Shown one piece after another: positions 25,075-59,900 of a stretch of DNA of 64,000 nucleotides. The position numbers and the translations under genes were made by a program. This DNA is from Azolla caroliniana (lineage: Eukaryota; Plantae; Polypodiophyta). Location: contig JBHGNT010000022.1 of NCBI GenBank assembly GCA_043228905.1, positions 10,106,001 through 10,170,000 of the forward strand. The letters are read 5' to 3'. The notes below the pieces were generated by a model. The model saw only the letters and a program-made list of their open reading frames with translations, was not told the origin of the DNA and did no database searches. Position 1 is the first letter of the stretch, and the number at the start of each line of letters is the position of its first letter.

Positions 25075-25085
25075 TGTCATAACTA

Positions 25086-25138
25086 GACTCGAACCCATAA
25101 CCTTTTGTTACACGGGTCGAGACTTTACCATTAGGTTA
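25086..25138 (-). promoter_or_regulatory. tRNA-like A-box/B-box module in the H LTR (second copy ~30380-30432)
   Basis: Minus strand TAACCTAATGG-N32-GGTTCGAGTC with AGGTT at the variable-loop position. Confidence 0.7.
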
Positions 25139-25364
25139 TGAGTTGTAATTTGAAGGATATTATTTTCATTTAGGTTTTATTAGGAAATTGATGTATATTC
25201 CAGATTTCTCTGGAACATTCTAGAAACTTCAGGAGTATTCCTGAAGACACTATAAAAGGAGGCGCAAGGCATTAGTTCGAACCAAATCGGTTCAACGCCA
25301 GTCTTAAGCCTTCTAACTACTGTTGTATATCTTCCGTCATATAATACATATATCTTTCGCATCA

Positions 25365-25400
<36 letters not shown>

Positions 25401-25535
25401 ACTCATTCCTTCTCTCAAAGTTCGACACCTCTCATAGTACTAATCCTTCTCTGTCTTAGTACTATTCCCCAACAATAGTACTAATCCTTCTTTTAGTACT
25501 AATTCCTTCTCTGCCTTAATAGAGTTCCTGACAGT

Positions 25536-25547
25536 TTGAACCGATTT
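25536..25547 (+). promoter_or_regulatory. Self-priming PBS of H
   Basis: TTGAACCGATTT is the exact complement of LTR 25284-25295, which starts 33 nt after the TATA at 25251. Confidence 0.88.
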
Positions 25548-25622
25548 TTCCCTACTAGTCTCCCTCTTCCTTCTGTCTCTCTCCTTTCCTACTAGTCTCT
25601 TATTTCCCTTTTCCTTCATCCC

Positions 25623-26792
25623 ATGGCCACCGTTAGCGCTGAAGAGTATCAATCCGTTTTCTCGGAATTTCAATGCTTGAAAGAGAAGTTTCATGCTTTG
25701 GAACAAGAAAATCAACGCTTGTTGGGGGATCTTCAGCAAATTTCTTTAGAAAAGCAGCAAACGCAACAACAGCATGGGGAACTTGCGTTACGCGTGCAAC
25801 AACTCGAAGCAACCATCGTAGCAATGCAACAACAAGGGCACGGAGCACAAGGGATTCATAAAGAACCCAAGATTGGCCTTCCCACGAAGTTCGATGGAAC
25901 GCGATCGCAGTTTAGAGGGTTTCTTAACCAGGTACGGTTAGTTATTCAAATGCATCCGTCCCGATATCCCACCGATGCATCACGAGTGGGTTTAGTAGGC
26001 ACGTTGTTAAATGGCTCAGCATTAGCATGGTTCGCTCCGCTACTAGAAAAGGAATCTCCAGTACTAAATAATTTTGAAGAATTCATAAGTGAGTTTAAAG
26101 CATGTTTTGGAGATACTGACAGCATAAGGACTGCAATCAACAAAATCCGGCGATTACGCCAAGGTGACCGTCCAGCCTCCGCATATGCTGCAGATTTCCG
26201 CCTACTCGCCACCGATATCCCCTGGGATGATCAAGCATTGATGGAGCAGTTCCGCTATGGTCTACGCAACGATGTCAAGGATTTACTCTTGACTTTCCCT
26301 GAAGAGCCAAAATCATTAACAGAAGCAATCAGTCGAGCGGTCAGATGTGACAACCGCCTCTTCGAGCGACGTTCGGAACGACAATTTCAGATGCCGAGGG
26401 CAAGATCCGAGCCTACCTATGCCTCAGTGGTAGCGAAACCTTTTCAAAGGGAGTCACATAATGCGCCTCCAGTAAGTACTCCAACTCCAATGGAAATTGA
26501 CACTACACGTCGTCGTGGGCCGCTATCGGAGGAGGAAAAGCAACGACGCCGAACAAACCGATTATGCCTTTATTGCGGTGGACCAGGGCATATCGCGATA
26601 AACTGTCCCCATAGACCAAGAAGGCAGGTAAACCAAGTCATTGTTAGTTCTGACTATACTAAACCCGAGTCTATGTCAGTAGGAATCTCTGATAATCCTC
26701 ATAGTCATAATAGTCCTAATAGTACTAATAGTCCGAATCTCGCAAACAAATTTGATGTCCTTAGCCAATTAGAAGAAGAGTTAAACGACTAA
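25623..26792 (+). CDS. gag: Gag of H: N-terminal coiled coil, capsid-like domain, zinc knuckle
   Basis: 389-aa ORF; [31 protein letters not shown]. Confidence 0.95.
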   Translation: MATVSAEEYQSVFSEFQCLKEKFHALEQENQRLLGDLQQISLEKQQTQQQHGELALRVQQLEATIVAMQQQGHGAQGIHKEPKIGLPTKFDGTRSQFRGFLNQVRLVIQMHPSRYPTDASRVGLVGTLLNGSALAWFAPLLEKESPVLNNFEEFISEFKACFGDTDSIRTAINKIRRLRQGDRPASAYAADFRLLATDIPWDDQALMEQFRYGLRNDVKDLLLTFPEEPKSLTEAISRAVRCDNRLFERRSERQFQMPRARSEPTYASVVAKPFQRESHNAPPVSTPTPMEIDTTRRRGPLSEEEKQRRRTNRLCLYCGGPGHIAINCPHRPRRQVNQVIVSSDYTKPESMSVGISDNPHSHNSPNSTNSPNLANKFDVLSQLEEELND

Positions 26793-26832
26793 GTCCAGCC
26801 AAAATAGGAGCCGTTTGGTTGGACAGCCCTAG
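26780..26832 (+). other. Predicted -1 frameshift signal of H (G UUA AAC plus 11-bp stem); G copy at 41579-41634
   Basis: Heptamer in gag frame, 6-nt spacer, GTCCAGCCAAA/TTTGGTTGGAC stem. Confidence 0.78.
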
Positions 26833-29800
26833 ATCTGTGCAGCCCATTAGTGGTTCCATTCCCTCTAAGCAAGTTAGTGATGTGTTCGTAGTCCAAGTAG
26901 CAGTTAGTACTAAAAGTACCCCTCCAGTACATACCTTAGCCCTTCTAGATTCCGGAGCTAATTCTTGCTTCATGGATAGGAATTTTGCCCGAGCTCATCA
27001 GATATCTCTCAGAAAGCTCCCATGTCCAGCCTCAGTAGTAGTCATTGATGGTCGTCCCATTGCTTCTGGTAATATCATAGAAGAGTCGGAACCCGTTAAT
27101 ATTGTCCTAGATAACTTAACATGTGTAGTATCATTTAATATTATTAGTATTCCAGAACATCCCATAGTTTTAGGATTACCATGGTTCGAGTTACATGACC
27201 CAGACATAGATTGGAGGACAAGGGAAATCCGGTTGCGACAAACCCAAGGATCTACCCAGAAGGTTGCAACCATTTCGCTACGTCAGTTGCGTGAGGAAGG
27301 GCGCAAGGAGGAAATGTTTCTCTTTGCAATATCAGTACAACCCTCCAGCACCACCAAAGAGGAGTCCACCGTTCAACTTCCCGAGAAGTATCGTCAGTAT
27401 GCTGATGTGTTCGATAAAGTACAAGCCAACACACTTCCTCATCATCGGCCGTACGACTGCGCCATCGACTTACAACCGGGAAAAGAGCCGCCATGGGGGC
27501 CGATCTACAATTTGTCACCAACCGAGCTAGAAGTCCTTCGAGCCTATATAGAGGAGAATTTGGAGAACGGTTTCATTCGGCATTCGAAATCTCCAGCCGG
27601 CGCACCCATTTTCTTCGTCAAGAAAAAAGATGGCTCGCTTCGACTCGTTGTAGATTACCGTGGCTTGAATAAGGTCACAGTAAGAAATAGGTATGCTCTT
27701 CCCCTTATCTCAAGTCTTTTAGAACGGATCAACGGTGCCAGGTTCTTCACGAAGATCGACTTACGAGGAGCCTATAACCTCGTACGGATCCGACCAGGAG
27801 ATGAATGGAAGACCGCGTTTCGCACCAGATATGGGCACTTCGAGTATACGGTCATGCCGTTCGGACTCACTAATGCGCCGGCAGTCTTCCAGCACATGGC
27901 GAATGATATATTTCGAGATCTCTTGGATGATTTTTTGATCATCTATTTGGATGATCTACTGGTTTATTCAAAGACCCAAGAAGAACATGATTCTCATGTA
28001 CTATTAGTACTAAAACGACTTCGAGAACATGGTCTGTATGCAAAGTTAGAGAAATGTAGTTTCGGGTGCAACCAAGTGGAGTTTCTCGGCTATGTCATCT
28101 CCTCAGAAGGCATATCTATGGACCCAGCCAAGGTCAAAACGGTGATAGAATGGCACACTCCGCGTTCGGTGCGGGATGTGCAATGCTTCCTAGGCTTTGC
28201 AAATTTCTACCGGAAGTTCATACAAAATTACTCAAAAATTGTGCTGCCTCTCACACAGCTCACCAGGAAGGGACAATCATTCATTTGGTCTAAAGAGACG
28301 GACATGGCTTTCGAGAGTCTTAAGAAGGCGTTTACATCAGCTCCAATTTTAGGTCATGTGGATCCGGAAAAACCATTCATTATCGAAGCTGATGCATCGG
28401 ATTTCGCATTGGGGAGCATTCTGTCACAACAGGGTAACGATGAGAAGCTACATCCTGTGGCTTTCCACTCCCGTAAGTTTGACGCCGCCGAAATCAACTA
28501 CGAAATTCATGATAAAGAGCTATTAGCAATAGTTGATTCTTTTATGCAATGGAGGCATTTCCTGGAGGGATCTCCTCATCAGGTCACTGTATTCAGTGAC
28601 CACAAGAACCTTGCCTACTTTCAAGATGCTCGTGTACTGAATCGACGTCAAGCTCGGTGGGCCCATTTCCTCACACGCTTCGACTTCAAAATTACATATC
28701 GTCCGGGGAAGCACCAAGGGAAGGCAGATGCATTATCACGGCGTTCGTATCTAACACCACGTCCCGGTGAGCCAGCTTTCGATAACCAGAAGCAAGTAAT
28801 CTTGGGTCCAGCACGACTGCAAGCAGCACAGATCTTTGACATGCCCGTGGATTCCGACATTACCAATACTATACGTGAGGACTTGAAGACTGACGCTTTC
28901 GCCCAAGCTATACTAGCACAAATTGACCCCTCTCGAGCGTCATGTTCACAATCACAATCACCAGGTACGGATTATCGGCAATTCAAATACTGTGATGGAT
29001 TACTCTTCTTTAAAGAACTTTTGTATGTTCCTAATGGTTCTTGCCGCCTTCGAGTAGTACAAAACTGCCATGACACATATACAGCAGGACATTTTGGTAG
29101 TACTAAAACATTAGATTTAGTACAACGATCATTCTGGTGGCCCCGTATGCGACAATTTGTCGAAGATTTTGTTCGGACTTGCGATACATGCTGCAGAGCG
29201 AAAATGCCAAGACATCATCCATATGGTTTATTAGAACCATTACCAATTCCAAGCAAGCCATGGCAATCCATTGCTCTTGACTTCATTACAGATCTTCCAG
29301 TCTCTAAGGGATTCAGTGCGATTCTCACAGTGGTGGATCGATATACGAAGATGGCTCATTTCTTACCATGTACTAAAGAAATATCTAGTGAAGACACCGC
29401 CGAAATTGTCATGCGGGAAGTATGTCGGCATCATGGACTCCCTGATAATATCATCAGCGATCGTGGACCCCAGTTTGTGTCAAAATTCTGGAAGCACCTT
29501 TTTAAAATGCTGAAGGTCACTTGTAACCTCTCCTCCGGCTACCACCCACAAACCGACGGTCAAGCCGAACGAACAAATCAAACACTGGAGCAGTATCTGC
29601 GGTGCTTTCTCAACTATCATCAGAATGACTGGGCAGATATTCTTCAGTTCGCCGAATTTGCCTATAATAACGCTATCCACGCATCGACTAAAGTCACGCC
29701 ATTCTACGCTTATACGGGATATCATCCCCGGTGGTGTGTCCTTGAAACCCCAGAAGTGTCCACAAATCCTTGCGCGGAGGATCGTTTGGAGCGGTTACGC

Positions 29801-30376
29801 AAGATACAAGCGGATTTATCTACTCAACTCCAGCAAGCTCAACAATCACACAAGGACTACGCAGATCGTCATCGACTTCCATCCAGTTTTAACATTGGAG
29901 ATCGGGTGTGGCTGCTACGACGACACATCAAGACTACTCGCCCATGTGAGAAGTTGGATTATCGACGATTAGGTCCTTTCCGTATTATCGGGAAGATTAA
30001 TGATGTCGCTTTTCGTCTCGAGCTACCTCCGCAACTTCGGATACACCCGGTGTTTCATAGTTCTCTCCTCGAACCCTATCACGAGAGCACTATCCCAGGA
30101 CGTACTATACAACCTCCACCTCCTATCGAGCTCGAAGATGGACCTGAGTATGAGGTCGCTGCCATCCTCGATTCCAAGATTGTTCGCAACAAGCTCTACT
30201 ATCTAGTCGATTGGCTAGGATATAGTCCCAGCGAGCGTACTTGGGAACCGATCGAGAATGTGACCAATGCTCGTGCTCTTCTAGAAGACTTCCATCGACG
30301 ATATCCCGAGAAACCGGGTCCTCAATCCAAAACGACTCGTGAAACTCGTCGTTTTAAAGGGGGGATAGTGTCATAA
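26786..30376 (+). CDS. pol: Pol of H (PR-RT-RNase H-IN-chromodomain), -1 frame relative to gag
   Basis: [32 protein letters not shown] motif, chromodomain EYEVAAILDSK...YYLVDWLGYSPSERTWEP. Confidence 0.96.
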   Translation, partial: RLSPAKIGAVWLDSPRSVQPISGSIPSKQVSDVFVVQVAVSTKSTPPVHTLALLDSGANSCFMDRNFARAHQISLRKLPCPASVVVIDGRPIASGNIIEESEPVNIVLDNLTCVVSFNIISIPEHPIVLGLPWFELHDPDIDWRTREIRLRQTQGSTQKVATISLRQLREEGRKEEMFLFAISVQPSSTTKEESTVQLPEKYRQYADVFDKVQANTLPHHRPYDCAIDLQPGKEPPWGPIYNLSPTELEVLRAYIEENLENGFIRHSKSPAGAPIFFVKKKDGSLRLVVDYRGLNKVTVRNRYALPLISSLLERINGARFFTKIDLRGAYNLVRIRPGDEWKTAFRTRYGHFEYTVMPFGLTNAPAVFQHMANDIFRDLLDDFLIIYLDDLLVYSKTQEEHDSHVLLVLKRLREHGLYAKLEKCSFGCNQVEFLGYVISSEGISMDPAKVKTVIEWHTPRSVRDVQCFLGFANFYRKFIQNYSKIVLPLTQLTRKGQSFIWSKETDMAFESLKKAFTSAPILGHVDPEKPFIIEADASDFALGSILSQQGNDEKLHPVAFHSRKFDAAEINYEIHDKELLAIVDSFMQWRHFLEGSPHQVTVFSDHKNLAYFQDARVLNRRQARWAHFLTRFDFKITYRPGKHQGKADALSRRSYLTPRPGEPAFDNQKQVILGPARLQAAQIFDMPVDSDITNTIREDLKTDAFAQAILAQIDPSRASCSQSQSPGTDYRQFKYCDGLLFFKELLYVPNGSCRLRVVQNCHDTYTAGHFGSTKTLDLVQRSFWWPRMRQFVEDFVRTCDTCCRAKMPRHHPYGLLEPLPIPSKPWQSIALDFITDLPVSKGFSAILTVVDRYTKMAHFLPCTKEISSEDTAEIVMREVCRHHGLPDNIISDRGPQFVSKFWKHLFKMLKVTCNLSSGYHPQTDGQAERTNQTLEQYLRCFLNYHQNDWADILQFAEFAYNNAIHASTKVTPFYAYTGYHPRWCVLETPEVSTNPCAEDRLERLRKIQADLSTQLQQAQQSHKDYADRHRLPSSFNIGDRVWLLRRHIKTTRPCEKLDYRRLGPFRIIGKINDVAFRLELPPQLRIHPVFHSSLLEPYHESTIPGRTIQPPPPIELEDGPEYEVAAILDSKIVRNKLYYLVDWLGYSPSERTWEPIENVTNARALLEDFHRRYPEKPGPQSKTTRETRRFKGGIVS

Positions 30377-30658
30377 CTAGACTCGAACCCATAACCTTTT
30401 GTTACACGGGTCGAGACTTTACCATTAGGTTATGAGTTGTAATTTGAAGGATATTATTTTCATTTAGGTTTTATTAGGAAATTGATGTATATTCCAGATT
30501 TCTCTGGAACATTCTAGAAACTTCAGGAGTATTCCTGAAGACACTATAAAAGGAGGCGCAAGGCATTAGTTCGAACCAAATCGGTTCAACGCCAGTCTTA
30601 AGCCTTCTAACTACTGTTGTATATCTTCCGTCATATAATACATATATCTTTCGCATCA

Positions 30659-30694
<36 letters not shown>

Positions 30695-31454
30695 ACTCAT
30701 TCCTTCTCTCAAAGTTCGACACCTCTCATAGTACTAATCCTTCTCTGTCTTAGTACTATTCCCCAACAATAGTACTAATCCTTCTTTTAGTACTAATTCC
30801 TTCTCTGCCTTAATAGAGTTCCTGACAGCGGCCTATCACTCCCGGACGAAGCACATCCAGCGAAGATATCACTGGATCCGGGAAAGGATAGAAGACGAGG
30901 AGTTCGTGCTGACGAAGATCCACACGGACGAGAACGGGTCGGATATGCTAACCAAGGTGCTCACACCCAACAAGCTGGAAGCATGCCGGAAGAGGATCGG
31001 ATTGGAGAGACATCCCATGCCGAAGTGAAGGGGGAGTTTGTTGGGATTTCGGTCCCTCCGGATGGGATGTCCGGAGATGAATGACGGCAAGCCCGGTTGC
31101 GGTTACGGAACCGGATGATGAGGAATACCCGGTATGAAGCCGGATGAAGAGTACCCGGATACGGATCCGGATGATGAAGTACCCGGATACGGATCCGGAT
31201 GATGAAGACCCCGGCTACGGAGCCGGATGCTGAAGACCCCGACTACGGAGCCGGATGACGAATGTACCCGGAGAGAGATCCGGACGCGGTGACATATTTG
31301 TGAATATGTTTTGCCAAGAGCCCTTGAGGCTATATTTGTAAATAGCCCGAAAGTCATATGTGTATAAATATGACTTAGGGCAAACAGTTAGTGGTTGTTG
31401 CTCATTTTTCTGTGTATCGCCACTCTTATGTGTGAAAGAGAGTGAAGAGAGCAG

Positions 31455-31487
<33 letters not shown>

Positions 31488-32429
31488 GAAGAGGTCGTTG
31501 CCTCTGTGTTTTACCGCCGCCTGTGGCGAAGACAACGAGCTCGAGGTCGTTGCCTTGTAGCTTCACCATTGTACATCTCTGTTTATAGTGATCGTTGGAG
31601 TTTGAGGACTCCCGTGGTTTTTCCCCATTTAGGGTTTTCCACGTAAAACATCCAGTGTACCTTTCTCTCTATTGTCCCCGTGCACTTCGTATTTCCTGTT
31701 TTCTGTGAGTTGATCCTATTCCTCGGTTGTGGCCGAGCACTGTTTTTCAACAGGTGCAAGGTTCGAATCCTTACTTGCCCTCCTTGTATATGTAAATATG
31801 TATATATATTTATATATTTATTTATCTAGTCGCCGGATACCGTTGGTTACCGGTGCCTCGCCGGATGCCGTCGTCGGTTGCCGCCGGATACCGGTGCCGT
31901 CACCGGATGCCGCCGTCTCACTGGCGCCGGATGTCGTCGCCGTCGGTTTCCGTTGCCGGTTGCCGCCGGATCACTGGCTCTATCGCCGGTCCGGTTTTGG
32001 TTGGCCAAAACCCTTTACGAGTAGCTAGCCCACCTCCACTCTTAGTTTAAGTTACCTTGAACTCTCTATGCTCCACACATAGACACAAAGATAATATCTT
32101 TTGCTCTACCTTATATATGATGAGAGCCGTATTTATCGTGCCTATGTGGGATATCTCACAATTTTCTCTTTTCCTTTCACAAACTTTATACCCTCATATC
32201 TTGACATTTAGTTGTCCGTTTCTCGTGTAATAAAGTGCATTCGAAACCTCCATCATTTTGTACTTAGATATTAAATTTATTTAAAATGTTATCTTCACAA
32301 TTATTGTATTATGTGATTCATACTCGATTTCGTACGTTTTATGGGATTTTCACACTATTGCCGAAAATCTTCACGACATCCACCCCCACCAAACCGCACG
32401 TCCTCCGGTACGTGCCAAGAAGAGAGAAA

Positions 32430-35400
32430 GTGAGATTTCGGCTACGATGATCAATTAGATTCCTCCATGTCTTCATTTTCATCCGCCCTGTTATGTTCAT
32501 CGTCGAGGTAATCGAGGTCAGGATCCTTGTCTTGTCTTTTCTTGAAAATCTTTACTCTTTTTCCCGCAATGGGTACAGCTTACCTTGATCCGTCTAATTC
32601 CGCAAGGTGGTATGTGGCATTATCGTTGGCACTTGTCACCACATACGACCCAAACCATCTTCTTGAGAACTTCCTTGTTGTACTATGTTGATTGTCAAGA
32701 GTGCTGTCGTAAACCAAAACCCAATCCCCTTCTTCAATCTTCTTGGGACGAAGTCAATGCGTGTTGTCGAACCGAACTTTGTTCTTTACTCGGGCTGCCT
32801 TCATCATCTTTCGCGCTTTTTCTAAATCTTCAGGTCTTCTTTCAAGTTGCCTTATCTGCACCGCTAATAACTCTTCTCGACTCATCTCGTTCTCCCACGG
32901 TATCGCTACCCATGAGGCGATCGTCCTTTCGATGGGCATAATCGGCTTTTTTCCATACATAAGCTCCGTCGGCATATGCCCTGTCACCGAGCTATGTGTC
33001 GTTCTATCGGCCCACAAGGCATAGGGTAATAGTCGTGGCCAATTCCCGACTCGACCGTTGCATGCCCCTACGATGGCTTTAACGATAGGTCCATGCCCTC
33101 GCTCGATCTTCCCATTTGCTTCCGGATTGTAGGCAGTCGTGAGGGAGAGCTTCACGCCTAGTCTTTCGAAGAGCTCCGTCGCTTCGTGCGCGTCCAACTC
33201 CCCTCGGTCGGTCACTATCTTCCCTACACATCCATATCGGCAAACAACATCTTCAAGTAAAAATTTACAAACGGCTAAAGTCGTCTTATTTGTCAAGGCT
33301 CGTCCTTCCACTTGATTTGTCAAGTCTTCCCTTGCCAGCGCTAAGTACTTCATTTGTTCCACTCCCATTGGCATCGAGACCAGATCCACCATCCATTTGA
33401 AGTGTATGGTGAGTGGGTATGTCGGCTTTAACTCATCACGATGACGTATATTTGAATATATTTGGCAAGTTTCGCATGTGGACACGAAATGGAGTACATC
33501 TTTGTACATGCTTGGCCACCAGTACTTCTCCTTCAACTTTTCGAATGTCACCCATGTTCCTCTATGACCTGCCCAAGCACTCTCGTGGAATTCGGTCATC
33601 AGCGTCTCTTGCTCTTCTTTCTTTACCACCACTCGACGTGGTATTCCTGTCCTTCTTTTTGGATGTCGCCAAAGGAATCCTCCCTTCAAGAAGTATCGGT
33701 AAGCTTTCTTTCGGATTCGTAGGGCCTCCTCCTTTGTCAACAAAGCATCTGTCGTCAATGTTCTTAGGAATCTACCGATGAGTAACCACTCTCCTTCGTA
33801 CTCGTTCTCGTTGAAGGCGTGGAGGGTTTGCGTGTCCTGGTCTTCCGCCGACAATCGAGCCATCTTGAAGAAGTCGAGGGCGACATCTTTATCTTCTGAA
33901 ACCATGTTACTTCCGTTTGAAAATCTTGCCCTCGATAGCATGTCAGCCATGGCGTTCTTCTTCCCTGCAATGTGACGGATCTCTGGGTTTAAAGACTTGA
34001 TGTAGGCGATCCATCTTAGCATAGCAAGATCTGGGGTCGCACATCCCGAGACCATTCCGAGAATTGGGAGACAATCTGTCTCTATTATCACTTCTGACCC
34101 GATCAGGTAATCTTTGTCCGTCTTCACTGCCGACACAATACCCCAAAGTTCCCACTTGACTTGGGCATATCTTTGTTGCCGTTCGCTGAGAACCTTTGCT
34201 CCGAACCGGACGGCATATCGCGCATTATCTTCACCTTCTTGATTGATGACCCACCCGATTCCGGTTGGGCTCGTATCTACGGTCATGTAAATTGGTTTCC
34301 CTTCGGCATAGTCGGCCTTCCTTAGTGCCGGAGCTTCAAGAAGCAGTTTCTTTAATCTTCGCATCGCCTTTGTGTGCTCGTCTCGTCATTCGAACTTTAT
34401 TCTTTTCTTTAGTAGTCCATATAACGGTTCGGCGACATGAGCGTAGTGAGGAATCCATATATGATAAAATGCGCACGCTCCAAGGAACCTTCGAACCTCC
34501 GTTTGGTTTTCGCATTCTTTTTTCATGTCTTGGATTGCGTTCACTTTGGATGGCGAGGGCTTCCGGCCGTATGCTCCACACAAGTGACCTACCACCAAGA
34601 TCTCCGGTTGCCCGAATGCGGATTTTTCTCCCGAAAATGTCAAATTCGCATCTTCGAGCCTTTAAAGCACCTTCTCGCAATCTTTCATATGATCCGCAAC
34701 GAACTTTCTACAACCTTCCTTATCTTTCGATTTATCTTTCTCCTCATCCGAACATCCTTTTATTGGAATATCATCCAAGAATGGCATCGTGATGTCCGGA
34801 ATGCAATCCTTCAAGACTTTATTCATGGCATTCACCATATGAGCCACCGAGTTCGTTGCGCCTTGGGGTAAGGTACACATCCGCACAAGCCCAATCGGAG
34901 TCCTCATGGTTGTAATGTCCCGACTGTCGATCGCCAATTGGAATTGGTCATATCCGGAGTAGAGATTGCCAATGGAGTAGATGGACCGGCCCGCAAACGC
35001 TTCGGCAAATTCGTCCACGCTCGGACCGATTCCGACATTTCAAATTGTCACCTTGTTGACGGGTTGAAGATCTTGGATGAATCACAATGATCCATTCTTC
35101 TTCGGCACCGTGAACCACCTATTGGAATAAGGAGCATTCGACGGTTCTAGAATTCCCATACTCACCTTCTCCTTTAAGAGCTCGATCAGCTTCGGAAGGT
35201 GTGCTCTCGGAACCGGTATCGGTTTCAAATTCCAAGGCACATGAGGCACCGTGAAGATCACCATCGGCTCTATAACCTTTGGGTCGGCGCATCCGATTTC
35301 TCGTGGGAAGAATGCGAAAGCCTTCCCATGTCTCTCAAGCCTATCGCGAAACATTCGCTCCTCTTCAGGGAGAAGGAAATCCTCCTTTCCAACTCGTAGC

Positions 35401-35938
35401 TTCCCCTTCGTCTCTTTGGTGAAGATATGACCTATCTTCTTCGGATCTCTTAAGCTTGGATCGTTAGCGACTTCCTTCATCTTTTGCCAGCTATCTTCCG
35501 GTAGCGGAACCGCAACTGGCTTGATCTTCTTATCCACTGTTTTATATTTCGTGTTGATGTCAGCTTCCTTCATCGAGATGCCACAACGGTATTCATCGAT
35601 GATAGCGTACATGTTGACGGAGTTAACCGAAATCACGCGTTGGTTGTGAAGATAGCTCAAGTCCACGACGTCCTCGATTTCGCCGATGGTGTCGTTAAAT
35701 GAGGCTTCTTCCATAATATGAGTCACGAACTCTCCTTCTTCTATTATGTTCTCTTCTTTCAGCATCTTCTCAAATTCTTGTATCCGGTGCTTGTGCTTCT
35801 TGTCGGGTAGTACTAGTTTACATGCGCCACTAGGTGTGACACATGTTGCTTCTCCTCGCAATCCACGCACTCTTCTTTCTTGTGGGGTCTTGTGATTGCT
35901 CGGACTATTTGTGCCCCATGCTTCAATAGTCCGCTCTA
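32430..35938 (-). pseudogene. pol: Pol (RT-RNase H-integrase) of element E
   Basis: ORFs 35082-35870, 34662-35018, 34386-34643, 32754-34364; LPQGATNS, FLDD, VDTSPTGIG, HESAWAGH...CETC. Confidence 0.95.
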
Positions 35939-35945
35939 AAAATCC
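35883..35945 (-). other. Predicted -1 frameshift signal of E
   Basis: GGATTTT then TAG; stem CGGACTATT/AATAGTCCG; loop TGGGG pairs with downstream CCCCA. Confidence 0.8.
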
Positions 35946-38110
35946 GAGGATTCACCTCCGAGACTATCTCGATTCCTTTCATGATTGGCTCGCACCGTTA
36001 GGAATTGGACCGATCTTTGGTTGTCAAGACTCTTTATTTGTGCGAAGGCTGCTCCATTATCGAACACTTTGGTCTCCATCCGAGATGATGTGATATAAGG
36101 TTGCCCTAGGATGACATGATGCGACGTCGATTCTTGTACGAAGAAGTGTTGATCCATCTCCACATCCCCGATCGTGACTTTGACATTGGGACAAGCTCCA
36201 TACAAATCCTCCGTAGACTTTGTTGCCGCGCGAATCTTTCATCCGTGGTTTGTATTGATTGGCCATCTTCCTTTTTTGTAGAAGTCGGTTGACATGAGGT
36301 TGATCTCCGAGCCATGGTCGATCAAGGTTACCACGGTCTCTTTCTTCTCCCCGATCTTCACCGGCGTCTTCGTTGTCGCTCGTGCCCAATGAGGTCAAGT
36401 GTGGTGGTTGTCCACCATATCTTCATCGATTTCGTCTCTTGCCATCGTTATGGCATTCGTTTTTGCTTTTTGCGGCTTCTCTTCTTCCTCGTCCGATTGT
36501 TGTCTCTTTCTCTTTACAAGGTCCACGATCGTGTCATGGAACTCCTTCTTCGTAATGCCAAGCAATTCCCTCAAGGACAAAGTTACGTGGCTATCAAGAA
36601 CTCGTTCTTCGAGAATCTTCTTTAGGTCTGTCGTCTGCTCTATGTCCGACCTTAGCTTATAGGTAGGTATGGTCCTTGTCCTCCGAGCGGGGTCTTCGAC
36701 ACCAACCTTCACGGGCCGAACCGTTTCTTCAACTCGTATGCTCGGCTCCACTTTTCGGCTTGATTCTCGTTCCTCCGTTTGTAAAGGTCGACTCGTCTCC
36801 ACATCGTCCTTGTTTTTCGCGTTCCTTGTTTCATGTCTTTTTGATGGCCCTTGCTCTTCTATTCTCTTTCTCTTTTCTTTGACGAACACCTCGTGGTTGT
36901 CGCACATCACCTCTGCGAGTATGGTGTTGTCGTCCATCGGATCCGACCACCCGGTTATGCTTTGCATGCTTCGGTCCGCAAGCTCTACCTCGTTCGATGT
37001 GATTTTTCCCTTCTTCTCATATTCGAGAACGGAAGTCCAAAACTTTGCTCCCGCTCTAGCAGCTTCAGTCTGGTCTTTCCCGACTCTTATTCCGGCCGAC
37101 GCAGCATAGTGCATCGCATCCACATGAGTCGCATCGGCATCCTCCATAGATCTCTTCATTCCTCCTCTTCCGAAATTCACCAGTAGGGGTCTTCTAGTCT
37201 CGCTTGAGTAGATCATGTTGTCCTCTATGTATACGATATTTTGTCGAATCGCCTCTCGAAGGCTCGCACAATCCCTTCTCATGTGGTCCATGCTATCGCA
37301 CCACACGCATCTAAAGGGTTCTTTTCCTTTAGGGCCCCGATGATTCATGTTGGCTAGCGTGACCTTCTCGAACTTCTTCGCTAGCTCTTCAATGATGTCG
37401 TCATCAATCTTCTTTTCTTCCACGTTACTTTGTCTTGGCGGCTTAGCTACTTTCGGCGGTCTTGCTTTCTCCGTGGTAGTCGATCCCGTCAAGTCGGTGT
37501 CATCAACCCATTGGCGACGCTTGTCGAGCCTATTGCATGCCCGCTTCAACGCGATCCAATCCGCTACAAGCCCATTTGCTTGGGTATCATCTTCGAGAAG
37601 CGTCCCCAACTCCCGTCTATCCTTTATGTCCACGGCCTTCAAGAAGTACAAAGTCTTGTCCTCTTCAAGCAATACTTGGTCCGTATTGGGGAGACGACTA
37701 AACATCTGGTCGAATTCGTCGTACACCCTCGAGACGCTCATCTTCTTATTCTTCTTCTCTATCCACTTCATCAGGGCATGTCGAGTCATCCTCGTGGAGT
37801 CTTCAGTCACGAACTCCGCTAGTATCGTTTTCTCGAACTCGAACCATGTTGTCTTACCTTCTTGAAGCTCGATGATGCGTCTTTGGATGTTGTTGGCGAC
37901 AACTCTCTTGAAGCTTGCGATTTGACGTGCCTCGGATAGGTCCCTCTGATTCATCTCCCTTCTATATGCATCAAGGAACTTCGTAATGTTCCTTCCATCG
38001 AATTGGCCCTCGAGCTCTACGACACGATCGACAGCCTTCTCCATGCTTGCGTCGTTGTCCCGAGATCTCATAAATTGCTCGACGATTAGCATCATCCTTT
38101 CGAGCGTCGT
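35936..38110 (-). pseudogene. gag: Gag-protease of element E
   Basis: ORFs 36395-38179 and 35936-36205; zinc knuckle CVWCDSMDHMRRDC; LIDHGSEINLM by hand translation near 36320; internal stops. Confidence 0.9.
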
Positions 38111-39949: not shown

Positions 39950-40003
39950 GACTCGAACCCATGACCTTATGGTATATGGGTCGAGCTCTTAACCATCTCA
40001 CCA
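39950..40003 (-). promoter_or_regulatory. tRNA-like A-box/B-box module in the G LTR (three copies in G)
   Basis: Minus strand TGGTGAGATGG-N33-GGTTCGAGTC with AGGTC at the variable-loop position. Confidence 0.7.
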
Positions 40004-40376: not shown

Positions 40377-40433
40377 TTTTCTCTCTAGCCTACTTGTCAC
40401 TCTCCCTCATCCTCCTACCCTTTTCCCTATACT

Positions 40434-46720: not shown

Positions 46721-46774
46721 TAGCATAATGGTAAAGTTGAGGTTTGGCTACGTGGAGGTATAGGGTTTGAATCC
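46721..46774 (+). promoter_or_regulatory. tRNA-like A-box/B-box module in the F LTR (second copy ~49479-49532)
   Basis: TAGCATAATGG-N32-GGTTTGAATCC; antisense to the element. Confidence 0.7.
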
Positions 46775-46838
46775 TGCCCTATGCACGTGATAAATATCTT
46801 GATATATTATTTTATTTATTTATATGTAATTAAATCGG

Positions 46839-48887: not shown

Positions 48888-48903
48888 CTCCTTGCCACCC
48901 GCC

Positions 48904-48921
48904 TTCACGTCGGGTTCACCA
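48904..48921 (-). promoter_or_regulatory. Primer-binding site of F, complementary to the tRNA-Trp 3' end
   Basis: TGGTGAACCCGACGTGAA, 4 nt after the 5' LTR; matches the plant cytosolic tRNA-Trp(CCA) end TTCACGTCGGGTTCA+CCA as I recall it. Confidence 0.85.
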
Positions 48922-50145
48922 ATTGTGTCGTGCCTTTCGGCTCCGGATCGTTGCGTGAGTCGGGTGGGAACCGCCGAGGTTTTGGACTAGGAGAAAGAAA
49001 AATACAAATAAGGCTAGTAAAGAATAGGTATAAAGAGTTATAAGATAAGAATCTCGTGAATCCCACGAGTTTAGTATATTTAGTCAATATTTAGGTAGTA
49101 AGAGAGAATTATTTTAGCAAATTCGTGAATCCCACGAATATTTTAGATTGATTGATCATTATAGAAAAATAATCAACAAAAACTACAATGTGCTCCCCAT
49201 CCTTATATAGTGATGGGAGAGACTAAGCATAACTACATGCTTTTTCTAATATGTTCATGCACACTAAATGTGCATGTGATGCTTTTCTAATCCTTGCTTT
49301 TATTTGCTAAATATAGTGCTCATGCACGCTAGATGTGCATGAGTCACTTTTTTGTTGCTTGCGTTTTTCTATAAAATATTCACGCACTCTAAAAAATGCA
49401 CGATTTACCTTTTAATAAAGGTAGGCGCAAATAAAGCACTTATAGTTATTAAATCTATATAGAACACTAAAGATAAGGTAGCATAATGGTAAAGTTGAGG
49501 TTTGGCTACGTGGAGGTATAGGGTTTGAATCCTGCCCTATGCACGTAATAAATATCTTGATATATTATTTTATTTATTTATATGTAATTAAATCGGTTAT
49601 ATTATTTTTACTTTTTCACGTAGTGTACGAAATACACTACGACAGCGGCATCGATTTTGTCTGGTCTCTTGTCCCCGAACTGAACCGGCAACCAAAGATC
49701 TTTAACCACGAGCATGTCCCTCATCTTCGACTTCCACACTGAATAGTTGGAGCCAGTGAGCTTGAACATGCCGCCCAACGATTCATCCTTTTTCTGTGTC
49801 GTTTCGCTCTGATACCACTTTGTCGAGTAATACGCGGAATAATCTCCAGTAACAACCGAAGGGAAAATCAGTAAGGACTACACGCTCTCTTAAAAAACAA
49901 TGCTTAGCCACAACCGAGTCTAGGATCAAACACAGAAAGAACGGGTAATGTACGCAAGACACAGTAAAGAGAAGAGTAGACAAGATGTTTACGTGGAAAA
50001 CCCAAACACGGGAAAAACCACGGCAGTCCACAGACTGCAAACTATCACTATGTTAGAATATACAGTAGATGAACACAGAGGCAACGACCTCTTGTTCACT
50101 GTCTTCGCCACAGGCGGCGATTATGACAGAGATACGAACTCTTCG

Positions 50146-50191
<46 letters not shown>

Positions 50192-54540: not shown

Positions 54541-55317
54541 CTCTTCTTGATCTTGGTGCATGTGCATGCATTTTAAATACATTCATGGTGGGTTTTTTTT
54601 TTCCATAATTACACCTAATACACAAGTTTAGGGTAGGTAGAATTGCTACCATGAAGGGTGGTTAGCCAACTTTTGACCTACCACTATCGGGTCGTGGTTT
54701 CGCATTTTGTTAGAGAAGGGATTTGGAGGTGTGGTCTCGAGATAGGTTTTCATTTGGAATGCATTGACCGATTTTGGCATGACTTAGCTCGCTAAAGTAC
54801 CGAGTTTGTACGTTCCGTTGAATTGATCGACGATCTAGAAGCATTCAGTCTAGCGAAATTGGAGTTTTCCCGGCATACCTCCGAGTCGAGTGTGGAAAAA
54901 CAACACTGCATTGCCAATCCCAAATAGTTGCTCATTGCTTTGTGTTGGGAAACATGTCCCTCCGGATGGGAAGAGAAGGACTGTGTTGTTGAGCGAAACT
55001 AAAATTGGAAACCGAAAACGAAATCAAAATCGGATATTGTAATTGAAATTGAAATTGAAAACCGAAATCGTTTCAAAAGACTATAATTGTAAATAGTCTA
55101 AACTACCTCCTGGGGGCTATACTTGTAAATAGACAAAAAGTTGCTTTGCTTTATAAGCAACTAGGGAAAACTTTATGTTAGCAGTTAGTTGATCATTATT
55201 GTAAAGTTAGAATGAGGTATTTGCCTCTGAAATTGTGAGTGAGAGAGTGAGAGTGTAACTTTGTAGCCGTCTCTTAGATGAAGGAGAACTCAAGGTCGTT
55301 GTCTCCGAGTTCCTTAT

Positions 55318-55935
55318 TGTGAAAGTGTTTTTAGAATTCAAGGTATTGAAGTCTACAAAAATATAAGGCATGGATCATTCACACCCGAAGGCCAAGAACA
55401 CGAGCTAAGGTTTCAAGTATAGGTCAAACTAAAAGCAAGAAAGATGGAGAAAAGTAAAAGAAGGAAAAAGCAGACCACCAAAAAGCAGTCAGAAACAAAC
55501 GCTCATAACTCTCTCGTTTGACACCCAAATATACGTGTAAATATGGGTTAGAAAGCTTATGACGAGAGCTATCCGTAACTTTTTAAAACTCTAAATTTGG
55601 AGCATGGACGAGGGAGATATGACGATTTGAAGATTGTTGTGTCATAGATAAGAATAGGACTCGATGAAAACTCTAAAAAAAGCATAAAAAAGAAAGCAAG
55701 GGAAGCTTATCCAGTGGAAGAGAGCTTTATATAAAGGAAGAAGAGTAAGGTGGTGTAAGAGGGTCTCTTTCTTGTGGTGATTTCTTTACAATTTATGTAG
55801 TGTTGTTCTTATCAATAGATACTTGTAGTTGTATCTTCTTTCTATATATTCCTTCTTTCATGATCAATAGATCTTTGTAGATTTGGGTTTCTATATCTTC
55901 CTTCTCTCTCTTTTCTTTCATCATCTCTCTTTTCA
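55318..55935. mobile_element. Solo LTR L inside the J 5' LTR
   Basis: TG...CA ends; TSD CTTAT at 55313-55317 and 55936-55940; the empty site is visible in the J 3' LTR near 63970. Confidence 0.85.
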
Positions 55936-56980
55936 CTTATTTGTACTTCCTCTCTACTATAGCGATTTGTTTTCTCAGGGTTTGTGGACCCCCGTGGTTT
56001 TTCCCATTTCGGGTTTTCCATGTAAAATATCAGTGTCTCTATGTCTTCACATTTTTCTGTCTGCGTACTAGTATTTGGTTTCTGCACAGGAATACGAATG
56101 TGAAACCGGATGTAGCCGGTCGATTCCCACCAAAGTGGTATCAAAGAGATGAAAGACTCGTTCGGCGGCATGTTGAAGCTAACCGGCTCCGACTACTTAG
56201 TGTGGAAGTTGAATATGAGAGACATACTCGTGTGGAAAGACCTCTAGCTGTCGGTGTAGTTCGGAGATAAAAGACCAGACAAGATCGATGTAGCGACTTG
56301 GGAAGTGTTGCATCTGGAAGCGGTCGCATACATAAGGTGTTTTGTAGACATGAGTCTATACAACAACTTCGGCGAAGAAATAGATGCAAGTGTCCTATGG
56401 AAGACGATGGGCGTCATGTTCAAAAATAAGAACGTCGTGAACTGAGTGTCAATATTTCGAAAAATCGTGAGCCACTGTTATCATGATGGCTCTAGTATGG
56501 TGGAGCACATCAATGGCTTCCAAGGATTTATGAACCAAACCATCTCTCTAGATGTACCTCTGGCCAACGAGGTATTAGCATTATTGTTTTGGGGATCCCT
56601 TCCGGATAGCTGAGAGACGCTCGTTGTCACTTTGGGCAACGCCGGGCCGGAAGGGAAACATCTATCCCTAAAGCAGGTGAAGTCGAGCTTGTTGAATGAA
56701 GGAACTCGTTGGAAGGACTGTGAATCCAATACCAACCAGAAGGCCTTAATCACGGAAGGTGACATGATTCGGGGAAGAGGTCGAAATCGAAGTCCCCAGA
56801 ACCGAGATAAGTTGGGAACCAGGTCGAAGTCGAGGGGGAGACCCACGTGCTTCTATTGTGGGAAGCCGGGGCACTTCCAGAAAAACTTCCAACACTTTTG
56901 AAAGGAGAAAGGGGGAGTTGATGGTGTATAGCCAAAGATAATCCCAGACAGTAAGAACACCTCAACAATCACTGTGAGTT

Positions 56981-59900
56981 AGGTCTAGGTGTACTTCGGG
57001 GTCCTCGTAATAGGACAAAAAGAGCCGAAACCGCATACGTGGGCACAAAAACATAGTTTATTGTTAACATGTTTTTCGTGTTTAAACTATTCATGACTCA
57101 AACATACATGGTTGAGCCTCGGGGAGCTACCATGAAAAAATCGATATAGAGATCAGGGGAAGCCATTCATTTGTCACCCCCATGGTTTTTAAAACACCTT
57201 TGTGTTACCATAATAACCTGATCTTTAACTTTATCTCATACGTCTAGAGGGGTATTAACGTGAGATCATGATATCGATTAATGTTGGCCCATGATTGTCA
57301 TGAAGATAACATTTTGGTTATCAAGAATCGAACCTACGACTTCTTGGTCTATGTGTTGAACCCTTAACCATTGTAATAATATATATGTTGTGTGATTATA
57401 ATAATTATGTTTCTAGTTATTACAAGATATTAGAATATTCTAGAACATTCTAGAACATTCTAGATTATTCTAGAACATCCTTTAATATTTCATGATTATA
57501 TTTCTTATCATAAAATCTAAAATATTCTAGAACATTCTAGATTACTCCATAAGGACCTATAAATAATTGTCTATACATTCGTTTCAACTCATTCGGTTCA
57601 AACTGTCGAGACTCGTGGGTAGAAGATAGAGTGAGAGCGAAAGAGAGAGGGTGTGTGTGTGTGCGTGAGAGAGAGAGAGTGAGACAGATAGAGTGAGAGA
57701 GAGAGTCAGAGAGAGATAAGACTTGAAATAGAAATGAGATTATATTATGATGAAACAAGATTACAATGAGTAGGCTAAGGGCTAAAGACATTCTAGAACA
57801 TTCTAGATTATTCTAGAACATCCTTTAATATGTCATGATTATATTTCTTATCATAAAATCTAAAATATTCTAGAACATTCTAGATTACTCCATAAGGACC
57901 TATAAATAATTGTCTATACATTCTTTTCAACTCATTCGGTTCAACACCAGTCTTTAGCCCTTAGCCTACTCATTGTAATCTTGTTTCATCATAATATAAT
58001 CTCATTTCTATTTCAAGTCTTATCTCTCTCACTCTCACTCTCACACACACTCTCTCTCAGTCTCTCTCTCTCACGCACACACACACACACTGTCTCTCTT
58101 TCGCTCTCACTCTCGCTCTCACTCTATCTTCTACCCACGAGTCTCGACAATGATATGTTCACATCATGACATGATGTTATGACTATTTTTTTGACCTTAT
58201 CCTATTTCTTTGCCAGAAATAATCATTCATTGGCTCAGAATAACGACCCGATGTCATCCGCTCAAGCAGAAGGAACTCAAGGAAATCCTCCTGGACTAAT
58301 GTCCATTGAGTCGTATTTTTTACAAATAAAACATTTCCTTAGTTCAACAGTTCATCATATGTCCAAACTTTGGCAATCTTAAAGTGTTCTCGAGGCACGT
58401 GTCATTAGTTTACAACGTGACACTAATAGACCTGATGAGCGTCAGGGTGAACCATCATTTATCGTAAAGCCATTTACGGGAGAAAAAAAGGAAAGAACCG
58501 AAGAATCAATCTGCACGTGGCTAGGCCAATGGGAGTCTTATTTTGAGCTCTATCCCATGCCAGATAGTACGAAGATTTCATATGTCAGCCGAGAACTAGG
58601 GGGTAAGGCGGCCGCCTAGTGGCGTGTGCTCTGAACTTTGGGGAAATTGCCCGATACCTAGACAGATTTTGTCACAGTTTTCAAGGGCCAATTTCTGCAT
58701 CTCCCTCTCAAACCGAAGCATCACAAGCTTTAATGAACCTCTCTAGCAGGAAGTTTTCCTCGCTACAAGACTATGTCCACCATGCTAGAACCTAAATCCA
58801 AAAATCGGGTCTAGAAGGGGACAATTGGTTAATAACTTGTTCTGTCAATGGCATCCCCAATTCAGACTATCACTGGATAGTGCACGATAACGATTCAAAA
58901 TCCTCTGAAGAGGCTGTTGAAATAGTTCTTCGCTATCAATGCACTTCGAAGGACCATAACAAACCCAACGAAGCGCCCGGGACTAAGCTATCGCAGTTCG
59001 CTAGAAAACGCAAGACACCCAACGAGTTCATGGATCGCAATTGTAAGCGACAACATCCTTTTTGCGTATTCTGCAAAAAGAAACACCTTTGTGTTACCAT
59101 AGTAACCTGATCTTGAACCTCATCTCATACATCTAGAGGGGTATTTACGTGAGATCATGATATCAATTAATGTTTGCCCATGATATGTTGCATCACGACA
59201 TGATGTTATGACTATTTGTTTGACTTTATCCTATTTCTTTGCCAGAAATAATCATCTAATGGCTCAAAATAACGACCCGATGTCATCCGCTCAAGCGGAA
59301 GGAACTCAAGGAAATCCTCCTGGACAAATGTCCATTGAGATGTATTTTTCGCAAATAACCCAATACCTTAGTTGCACTGCTCAACAGATGACCGAACTTA
59401 GTTGCTACCATCAAATTCGTATAAGTGAGGATGATGTTCCTAAAACGACATGTCGTACGCCTTATGGCCATTACGAGTTTTTGGTTATGCCTTTTGGTTT
59501 GACCAATGCTCAAGCCACATTTCAACTAGAAATGAATGACATTTTCTGAGAACAACTTGGAAAATTCATCCTTATTTTCTTGGATGATATTGTAGTTTAT
59601 AGGAAAACATTAGAAGAACATGCTAAACATCTCCGCTTTATTTTACAAACATTGCGTGACAAGCAATTCTACATGAAGATCTCAAAATGCAAGTTCTCCA
59701 AGAAATTAATTACTTATCTTGGACATCTCATAACTGAACGAAGAGTTGAAATTGATCCTTCTCGCATCGAGAAAATCAAACTTTGGCCCACTCTTCGGAA
59801 TATTCAAGAAGTTTAGGTTTTGTCGGGTTTTTGAGAAAATCCCTTCGTAATTACTCCCAATTCACGACGTTGTTTATTGATATTTTGAAAGGTGAAAGGT

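Follow-up and report, generated by a model that had tools for sequence, protein, structure and literature searches.

An antisense tRNA-like module conserved in the U3 region of chromovirus LTRs and in part of a second Gypsy lineage

A module resembling a class I tRNA gene is inherited as a component of the LTRs throughout a streptophyte chromovirus clade and in some members of a second Gypsy lineage. Under purifying selection, it has retained the residues corresponding to tRNA positions U8, R9, A14, R15, Y16, G18 and G19, those corresponding to G53, U54, U55, C56, A58 and C61, and positions 20-24 and 44-48, and both the length and the register of the module are fixed. Based on its sequence, we tentatively interpret this 74-nt module in U3 as the remnant of a class I tRNA gene or of a tRNA-derived SINE head that may act as a TFIIIC/Pol III platform and boundary, an interpretation to which we give somewhat less than an even chance.

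The module and its carrier elements in the window

Five LTR families (H, G, M, F and E) carry the module in the window, which is the whole 64-kb stretch of DNA that was analysed (Table 1). A preliminary description had listed motif strings for each of these families, and all are present as written, with spacers of 32 nt in H and F and 33 nt in G and M. The 32-nt spacer in E is obtained once the Copia insertion at 20444-31757 is removed. This element is inserted within the E module, where it separates the variable-loop positions from those of the T arm, and has a 5-bp duplication (GGTGC) on either side (20439-20443 and 31753-31757). Polypurine tracts, ORFs and TATA boxes establish that every module in the window is antisense to its own element and located upstream of that element's TATA, as had been proposed.

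Both LTRs of H and both LTRs of F carry the module, and those of H (25075-25534 and 30369-30828) are 100% identical. G contains three modules, as part of its 3ˊ LTR is duplicated. The 5ˊ LTR of E is truncated after ~470 nt, and thus the module is found only in its 3ˊ LTR, which runs from 32378 down to 31758 and continues from 20443 down to ~19950. In the 5ˊ LTR of H, the module adjoins the LTR tip (TGTCA at 25075), with the B box at 25086-25095 and the GG of the A box at 25128-25129. In the 3ˊ LTR of F, ~105 nt separate the module from the U3 tip (46886), and it is ~270 nt upstream of a TATA near 46450.

Table 1. Coordinates of the modules and their carrier elements in the window
Feature	Position	Strand	Remarks
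H 5ˊ LTR module	25075-25145	-	R1 50.1 bits; tRNA-like sense is the minus strand
H 3ˊ LTR module	30369-30435	-	Identical copy; R1 50.3 bits; polypurine tract 30356-30368 immediately before
G 5ˊ LTR module	39937-40010	-	R1 54.8 bits; LTR tip TGTCAT at 39934
G module, duplicated first ~224 bp of 3ˊ LTR	45177-45247	-	Adjoins polypurine tract; R1 match
G 3ˊ LTR module, second copy	45400-45470	-	R1 match
M LTR module	57312-57385	-	R1 51.7 bits; LTR tip 57296; homologous to G/H
F 3ˊ LTR module (minus-strand gag-only element)	46712-46784	+	R1 38.6 bits
F 5ˊ LTR module	49473-49540	+	Pattern and R1 match
E module, 5ˊ part	20395-20443	+	A box, D-arm-like and anticodon-arm-like region; interrupted by Copia insertion
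E module, 3ˊ part	31758-31780	+	T-arm-like region with B box GGTTCGAATCC; R1 19.4 bits, outside training set
Element H	25075-30828	+	Intact chromovirus; gag; PR-RT-RNaseH-IN-chromodomain; 460-bp LTRs
Element G	39934-45823	+	Chromovirus; ~78% DNA identity to H; pol split over two ORFs
Element F	46166-49644	-	3.5 kb; 722-bp LTRs; one 689-aa gag-like ORF
Element E	31758-38574	-	Non-chromovirus Gypsy; DUF4100 gag-like ORF and RNaseH-IN
Copia element D	20444-31757	+	LTRs 20444-21165 and 31039-31752

Elements G, H and M belong to one chromovirus clade, and H is nested in a Copia pol gene with the target-site duplication GCGGC. Elements E and F form one lineage with a DUF4100 gag; their gag-like ORFs are homologous (34% identity), and the Pol of this lineage is 21% identical to that of H. 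The primer-binding site of F is complementary to a tRNA 3ˊ end. The preliminary count of five families from two Gypsy lineages is accurate in that the two lineages are deeply different, but it amounts to only two or three independent observations since G, H and M come from a single clade, as E and F do from a single lineage.

Matches of this kind are not expected by chance. The pattern AATGG-N30-36-GGTTYGANTC occurs five times, compared with 0.02 occurrences expected. Matches to a degenerate three-block pattern proved far rarer in control sequence: two in 497 kb of chromovirus loci read on both strands (~1 Mb), versus nine in the window plus the one in E, from five families. A search of 626 kb with a sequence model of the module (R1) returned no matches besides modules, and the window search gave no R1 match in the LTRs of the Copia, A and K elements, from which the module had been reported absent. 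All R1 matches in the window and in the chromovirus loci are antisense to the element.

Conservation among related families

Related chromovirus families were retrieved from independent public assemblies through the Pol protein alone. The module is present in all eight distinct families (Pol identity 55-82%), antisense as in the window, directly after the polypurine tract and TGTCA tip and with a core-to-core spacing of 33-34 nt. An incidental SINE insertion, which the preliminary description had named as a possible origin to be checked, was therefore rejected: rather than being sporadic, the module is a constant part of the LTR across related chromovirus families, occurring in both LTRs and in 8/8 related families from other assemblies. 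Moreover, it has no SINE body, tail or target-site duplication of its own, and the B box of H is only 11 nt from the LTR tip.

Because the chromovirus module adjoins the polypurine tract and the LTR tip, it might be a cis-element for replication that functions in polypurine-tract selection, plus-strand priming or integrase binding. The module is 11-43 nt from the tip, within U3, in 11 of 11 chromovirus families, and in H the tip coincides with the tRNA-like 3ˊ end, as might be anticipated for such a role. However, the distance is ~105 nt in F, ~250 nt in a relative named L090 and ~600 nt in E, and no structure is conserved. We consider this explanation the least probable of those weighed here.

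The 12 families that were aligned give 74 almost gapless columns, some of whose conservation served to set the register, and the invariant columns correspond to tRNA positions U8, A14, G18, G19, A21, G53-U54-U55-C56 and A58, the positions of the A and B boxes. Positions U16, U20, A44, G45 and U47 are likewise invariant or nearly so. Overall, 10 columns of the module are invariant and 17 are conserved at ≥90%, versus 0.2 and 0.8 in shuffles, whereas neighbouring U3 windows yield 4 and 10, 1 and 4, 1 and 3, and 0 and 0, respectively. The class I register is maintained in 13/13 families, with 34-35 positions from G19 to G53, and C61 is kept in 11 of 13 modules. The B box GGTTCGANTCC is matched at all 10 positions in H, G, M and E and at all but one in F, and every relative retains its GTTC-A. 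When the region 30-60 bp before the B box is compared with the A-box consensus TRGCNNAGTGG, U8, R9, A14, R15, Y16, G18 and G19 are conserved with the correct spacing, and G10 and C11 occur in no families but F, E and L084.

Conservation of the AGGTC block (positions 44-48) and of positions 20-24 indicates that the retained sequence is wider than the two textbook boxes. Since these are not classic box positions, the agent of selection could be another binding factor. The tRNA-derived block might have been exapted as an ordinary Pol II enhancer, wherein GGTTAA-type, AGGTC and TTCGAA-type blocks bind Pol II factors and there is no role for Pol III. Conservation beyond the textbook boxes is consistent with this possibility, as is the placement of the module upstream of the TATA in a U3 that has conspicuous heat-shock-element-like arrays as well. 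We nevertheless judge it rather unlikely because the conserved columns are universal tRNA positions, the spacing is fixed within 1 nt over 13 families although separate factor sites need no such constraint, and the strict orientation across the chromovirus clade would be unexpected for an enhancer.

The E/F lineage is patchy, with four related LTRs that lack the full module and one relative that has an extra weak copy in the sense orientation. In the sense of the module, seven of 12 families have a T4 run no more than 50 nt downstream, which in some comes only from the complement of the polypurine tract, and G and L001 have none, in agreement with the earlier statement that no T-run terminator is conserved. 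A tRNA or SINE-head fragment might have been captured once or a few times and simply tolerated, remaining antisense only because sense copies face RNase P/Z cutting or termination. The patchy distribution, the decayed stems (see below) and the unconserved terminator would suit such a passenger, and tRNA-like pieces exist in quite a few Repbase LTRs (Kojima, PMC10886601). However, the module is the most conserved block of U3 in families that share only 55-82% identity in Pol and have LTRs that otherwise cannot be aligned, and its length is constant without indels. Neutral carriage therefore appears quite unlikely.

Folding of the corresponding RNA

ARAGORN identified 0 tRNA genes, and Rfam model RF00005 (E≤10) gave no match in the whole window, in 101-nt searches of H and G, or at nine related loci. 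The covariance model, whose application had been suggested, therefore makes no call on the modules. Cloverleaf pairing is found in 46.4% of cells, compared with 46.3% in shuffles, with values for individual stems of 40% (acceptor), 31% (anticodon), 56% (D) and 62% (T). The acceptor and anticodon arms are thus mostly unpaired, as first described, and pairing overall is no better than in shuffles. In an assessment of the anticodon loop (U33 and a purine at 37), the anticodon-arm columns show no conservation. A functional tRNA gene or pseudogene was rejected on these grounds, even though the universal residues stand in class I register. With no conserved cloverleaf and no tRNA call, what has been retained is not an RNA that functions as a tRNA. 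The preliminary proposal that the boxes are kept and the fold is lost holds for the box columns and the cloverleaf, but needs to be extended because retention also covers positions 20-24 and 44-48.

Selection might instead operate on the plus-strand RNA, whose complementarity to the D-loop and T-loop of tRNAs could allow pairing with tRNAs or their fragments as a decoy, target or packaging signal. Plant tRNA fragments target Gypsy transcripts (PMC5605234), and the complement is located in the 3ˊ untranslated portion of the genomic RNA. However, a 5ˊ or 3ˊ tRNA fragment would rely on positions 1-13 and 62-76, where no conservation is seen, and the conserved blocks alone are too short to pair stably, making this mechanism very improbable.

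The G module folds as a long imperfect hairpin (z about -7), and less extreme z-scores are obtained for L001 (-3.8), L008 (-3.1) and H (-2.9). In the G/H/L001 subfamily and L008, the module might now be a stable hairpin that gives rise to a small RNA, similar to Pol III-driven retroviral pre-miRNAs. In addition to the z-scores, there are weak matches to miRNA precursors, and BLV offers a precedent (PMC12498455). However, the hairpin is not kept in M, is missing from families other than these four, and has an inner stem without compensatory changes. As an account of the module, a hairpin RNA is improbable.

Possible function and relationship to known systems

We favour, with the reservation given at the outset, a scheme in which a class I tRNA gene or tRNA-derived SINE head was incorporated in U3, facing away from the Pol II promoter of the LTR itself. 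Its acceptor and anticodon stems have decayed, and the letters of the internal type-2 Pol III promoter have stayed. The module would then act as DNA, as a candidate binding platform for TFIIIC and probably for TFIIIB and Pol III. In favour of this, the module is preceded, in its own sense, by AT-rich, TATA-like sequence and a CA or CAA at the nominal +1, an arrangement also found in plant tRNA genes, and T4 runs follow it in the families noted above. The likeliest gain would be a boundary at the outer end of U3, occupied by TFIIIC/Pol III and free of nucleosomes, that leaves the LTR promoter accessible within silenced nests of repeats. Pol III might also make a short outward transcript, as a by-product or for a second function, and antisense placement would keep the tRNA-like fold and T-run terminators off the element's own RNA. 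Against the scheme stand the retention of A-box positions G10 and C11 in few families, the unconserved terminator, the conservation of positions 20-24 and 44-48 and the patchy E/F lineage, and TFIIIC is not known to act as a barrier in plants.

A more far-reaching version, which we regard as possible but doubtful, is that the entire, apparently self-priming, autonomous streptophyte chromovirus clade carries a working type-2 Pol III/TFIIIC unit divergent from the Pol II promoter. A second Gypsy lineage would have acquired it separately, and it would serve as a portable boundary or activation platform for firing in silenced nests and, in one subfamily, also produce a hairpin RNA via Pol III. If so, these would be the first autonomous LTR retrotransposons to use Pol III machinery in cis although Pol III does not transcribe them. 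Should TFIIIC or Pol III be recruited, LTR retrotransposons could carry their own insulator or open-chromatin device, which bears on how high-copy elements remain transcribable in heterochromatic nests and on whether a TFIIIC boundary function exists in plants. The modules are also dispersed, very high-copy A/B-box sites that could soak up Pol III factors and confuse the annotation of tRNAs, SINEs and small RNAs.

No description of an antisense tRNA-derived cassette in protein-coding LTR elements was found in the literature. The closest systems are the Cassandra, Helenus and Ajax TRIMs, whose LTRs contain Pol III promoters from small-RNA genes (PMC10886601). Helenus, the tRNA-type TRIMp3 group, comprises non-coding TRIMs of 311-1263 bp with a single known plant case, in Selaginella; Pol III transcription from the tRNA-like promoter is supposed, and capture of a SINE or tRNA into the LTR is the proposed origin (Kojima 2024, PMC10886601). 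As in Helenus, the LTR segment described here is tRNA-like, conserves the A/B-box letters and is unlikely to be a functional tRNA. In contrast, its carriers are coding chromoviruses of ~5.7-5.8 kb (gag, pol and chromodomain) and a second Gypsy lineage (F being 3.5 kb with a 689-aa ORF), and they have their own TATA promoter. They also differ in that the module is antisense, whereas the sense orientation of Helenus is implied by the TRIMp3 concept rather than read from sequences. Because the module faces the opposite way, it cannot drive the genomic RNA of the element.

Cassandra and Ajax likewise retain the internal Pol III promoter of a small-RNA gene within the LTR, but theirs is a sense-oriented 5S type-1 promoter in non-autonomous TRIMs, and Rfam searches of the module-bearing sequence gave no 5S rRNA match. 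Similar to tRNA-derived SINE heads, the module keeps the A and B boxes and has decayed acceptor and anticodon stems; unlike them, it is integral to both LTRs and to related families. The BLV miRNA cluster (PMC12498455) combines type-2 Pol III promoters with hairpins, comparable to the G/H/L001 form, although the BLV units are sense-strand, clustered and proven miRNA sources and the hairpin here is subfamily-specific and putative.

TFIIIC-bound B-box boundaries and tRNA-gene insulators include the IR boundaries of fission yeast, the HMR tRNA of budding yeast and the mouse B2 SINE. By analogy, the module may be a Pol III-factor platform that delimits chromatin domains beside a Pol II promoter, but those elements are host loci or dispersed SINEs and are not built into an autonomous LTR retrotransposon. 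With this module, the LTRs known to contain promoters of small-RNA genes extend from tiny TRIMs to coding elements, and to the opposite orientation.

Composition of the window and its modules

The picture of the elements was assembled from self-comparison of the window, ORFs, Pfam domains and LTR ends (see table). Upon direct check, the five motif strings claimed in the preliminary description are present in the sequence as written. The module, a 74-nucleotide tRNA-like block in U3 with an A-box-like part and a B box, also lies antisense to its element and upstream of the TATA box in all cases in the window, as had been stated. The chromovirus H is flanked by a GCGGC target duplication, and its relative G has three module copies because the start of its 3′ LTR (the first ~224 bp, including the module) is duplicated in tandem.

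Module halves in element E are separated by Copia element D, and joining them is legitimate because D is flanked on both sides by the 5-bp target duplication GGTGC. The insertion point lies between the variable-loop and T-arm positions. There is no support for insertions homing to modules, as D is the sole insertion within any module and this single event therefore gives no evidence of targeting. The 3′ LTR of E runs through the module and lines up without rearrangement with that of a relative from an independent assembly (L090), which carries an E-type module in antisense orientation. Only the first ~470 nt of the E 5′ LTR are left, followed almost at once by the gag-like ORF; a deletion has removed the remainder of U3, with its module and TATA box, as well as R, U5 and the primer-binding site. 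Tandem GCCGGAT(A/G)CCG-type repeats occupy the E U3 between LTR tip and module.

Elements, modules and neighbouring features in the window and in related loci (prefix L)
Feature	Coordinates	Strand	Description
Copia D	20444-31757		LTRs 20444-21165 and 31039-31752
GGTGC duplication	20439-20443 and 31753-31757		Flanks Copia D
H	25075-30828	+	Intact chromovirus, identical 460-bp LTRs; module (strand opposite to element) TAACCTAATGG-N32-GGTTCGAGTC
H polypurine tract	30356-30368		
G	39934-45823	+	H relative, DNA identity ~78%; module (opposite strand) TGGTGAGATGG-N33-GGTTCGAGTC
G tandem duplication	45168-45394		Start of 3′ LTR
M			Lone LTR of the G/H kind; module (opposite strand) TATTACAATGG-N33-GGTTCGATTC
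F	46166-49644	minus	3.5 kb, 722-bp LTRs, single 689-aa ORF; module (opposite strand) TAGCATAATGG-N32-GGTTTGAATCC
F gag-like ORF	46839-48908	minus	
E		minus	594-aa gag-like ORF and RNaseH-integrase ORFs; module (opposite strand) ATGCTTAATGG-N32-GGTTCGAATCC after removal of Copia 20444-31757
E gag-like ORF	36395-38179	minus	
E 5′ LTR	38105-38574		Truncated
E 3′ LTR	32378 to about 19950		
E U3 tandem repeats	31800-31970		
G LTR, Copia fragment, F LTR	45100-46900		High-depth stretch
TTCTAGAACATTCTAGAA-type arrays	25200-25235, 40060-40095, 57425-57560; L004:4380-4440; L085:4905-5016		U3 repeats
Mutually complementary stretches	H 25277-25300 and 25535-25552; G 40147-40165 and 40363-40380		
B-box-like blocks	L087:4690-4760		Tandem
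L090 module	L090:9702-9769	minus	E type
L090 second block	L090:10062-10120	+	12.4 bits
E-lineage LTRs with ATGGTTCGATCATG block	L088:2190-3450, L090:6140-7340, L091:2400-3550		Block antisense, full module absent

The Pol of E is only 21% identical to that of H. Homology links the E gag-like ORF to that of F (34% identity across 194 aa), and both have relatives that carry DUF4100 (PF13352). For these reasons, the two Gypsy lineages of the preliminary description are indeed deeply separate, whereas its five families count as no more than two or three independent cases. No Pfam gag match was found for the E and F gag-like ORFs in the window. The F ORF is long and intact despite the absence of pol from this element. 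The best named relatives of the Copia Pol are angiosperm TNT1-like proteins (~60% identity), the E gag cluster is mainly from Streptophyta, and the Pol protein search yielded no close named relative of H Pol. The Copia and gag results place the host among the streptophytes and speak against a rust fungus.

Distribution and specificity of the module

Relatives of H were found by a protein search with its Pol, the surrounding DNA was fetched, and the sequence after the pol stop codon was read. In all eight distinct relatives (55-82% identity; L001, L002/3/5, L004/7, L006, L008, L084, L085 and L086), drawn from several samples among ENA and JGI assemblies, a polypurine tract is followed by a TGTCA tip and, 11-43 nt on, by the antisense module. 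All 11 chromovirus families have a core-to-core spacing of 33 or 34 nt, and their LTRs do not align with one another outside the module. Because order and spacing are the same in all eight relatives, and the module is present in both LTRs of H, G and F, we rule out an alternative raised at the outset, namely that SINEs had inserted sporadically in a few of the copies. A ninth relative (L087, 60% identity) has two tandem antisense AGTTCGAATCTC B-box-like blocks after the LTR tip, with no A-box part visible up to the contig end. About 70 more distant chromovirus loci from soil and fungal-type metagenomes are without the module, and we reject it as a general chromovirus feature.

The modules are not chance matches. 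The pattern AATGG-N30-36-GGTTYGANTC has five matches in the window versus 0.02 expected. A degenerate three-block pattern matches nine times in the window, the split copy in E being additional, and twice in control chromovirus loci (497 kb on two strands). Furthermore, a sequence-only model (R1) trained on 12 families was run against the window and 87 fetched loci, a total of 626 kb. Its matches are modules only, every one of those in the window and the chromovirus loci is antisense, and the 3′ half of the E module was recovered although it is outside the training set. There are no R1 matches in the LTRs of families A and K or of the Copia elements, where the module had been described as absent.

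The module is patchy in the E/F lineage: E, F and one L090 element have it, while no full module occurs in L088, L089, L091 or the second L090 element. This patchiness suggests secondary acquisition of the module in this lineage. E-lineage LTRs of L088, L090 and L091 that lack the full module contain an antisense ATGGTTCGATCATG block, which may be a decayed B-box remnant. The E-type LTR of L090 also has a second, weaker tRNA-like block that is sense-oriented and thus convergent with the antisense module.

Three families sampled from the window (G LTR, a Copia fragment and F LTR) each reach a very high total depth in contigs from runs labelled as four different organisms. Among the contig variants listed for them, many are 80-95% alike.

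Conserved columns and loss of the tRNA fold

The alignment of the 12 families is almost free of gaps across the 74 columns. By tRNA numbering, the invariant or nearly invariant columns are U8, A14, U16, G18, G19, U20, A21, A44, G45, U47, G53, U54, U55, C56 and A58, and 11 of 13 modules have C61. Module and flanks were compared by column conservation in place of pairwise global identity, which is uninformative because the AT-rich flanks align spuriously. In a set of ten non-redundant families, 10 module columns are invariant and 17 are conserved at 90% or more, compared to 0.2 and 0.8 for composition-matched shuffles; the corresponding values for the next four U3 windows are 4/10, 1/4, 1/3 and 0/0. 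The module may nevertheless be a neutral passenger.

Cloverleaf pairing is found in 46.4% of the alignment cells; shuffles give 46.3% and slid controls 34-52%, and a conserved cloverleaf is therefore rejected. The acceptor and anticodon stems are paired in 40% and 31% of cells, in agreement with the earlier remark that these arms mostly do not pair, and the D and T stems in 56% and 62%; the sole well-kept pair is G53-C61. A tRNA gene or pseudogene is likewise rejected, as neither ARAGORN nor the Rfam tRNA model gave a match, even in 101-nt searches. The anticodon region of E may resemble that of tRNA-Trp, but the 3′ part of this module contradicts such an origin. With box columns at or near invariance and pairing at the level of shuffles, these comparisons support the proposal that the DNA boxes rather than an RNA fold are probably being retained. 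Folding gives a strong, long hairpin for G (z about -7), L001, H and L008 but none for the other families; the hairpin is therefore a subfamily feature, and a common conserved hairpin is rejected.

Read in its own sense, the module is preceded by 50 nt of AT-rich sequence containing TATA-like strings, and the nominal +1 is CA or CAA in most families. Such flanks resemble the upstream regions of plant tRNA genes, although U3 is AT-rich anyway. A T4 run occurs within 50 nt downstream in only 7 of 12 families, some of these runs deriving from the polypurine-tract complement, which bears out the earlier statement that no T-run terminator is conserved.

In H, G, M and related elements, U3 also contains arrays of TTCTAGAACATTCTAGAA-type repeats. 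Like heat-shock elements, these arrays alternate in an nGAAn/nTTCn layout, and they give spurious matches to miRNA-precursor hairpins in Rfam. Directly after the 5′ LTR of H and G lies GTTTGAACCGATTT, which is complementary to AAATCGGTTCAAC, located a short distance past the TATA box. Neither element has a tRNA-type primer-binding site, and the arrangement fits Tf1-like self-priming.

A candidate Pol III promoter cassette and its precedents

The best-supported reading takes the module for a type-2 Pol III promoter cassette of tRNA origin, apparently maintained by purifying selection. Acting as DNA, it would recruit TFIIIC and perhaps Pol III at the outer edge of U3 and point away from the Pol II promoter. 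We infer TFIIIC binding from the conserved boxes, and we speculate by analogy that such binding might provide insulation. The antisense orientation is as expected if sense copies harm the genomic RNA, with cleavage by RNase P or Z, or T-runs, as possible causes. Alternatively, and less probably, the module may serve as an exapted Pol II enhancer or a replication cis-element, or may pair with tRNA fragments (PMC5605234).

A limited full-text literature search, which does not prove absence, yielded no description of an inverted module in coding LTR elements, in line with the initial impression that this arrangement was not known. Kojima (2024, PMC10886601) mentions tRNA-like pieces in quite a few Repbase LTRs. 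The cases described there are short non-coding TRIMs only, one of them from plants. Cassandra, initially named as the closest precedent, is among the closest systems, but Helenus and Ajax are equally listed as TRIMs whose LTRs have tRNA- or 5S-derived promoters (PMC10886601). Like the module, tRNA-derived SINE heads have kept the promoter letters and lost tRNA function. Unlike the non-coding Helenus, Ajax and Cassandra, the carriers in this study have coding capacity and a TATA promoter of their own, and their module is inverted.
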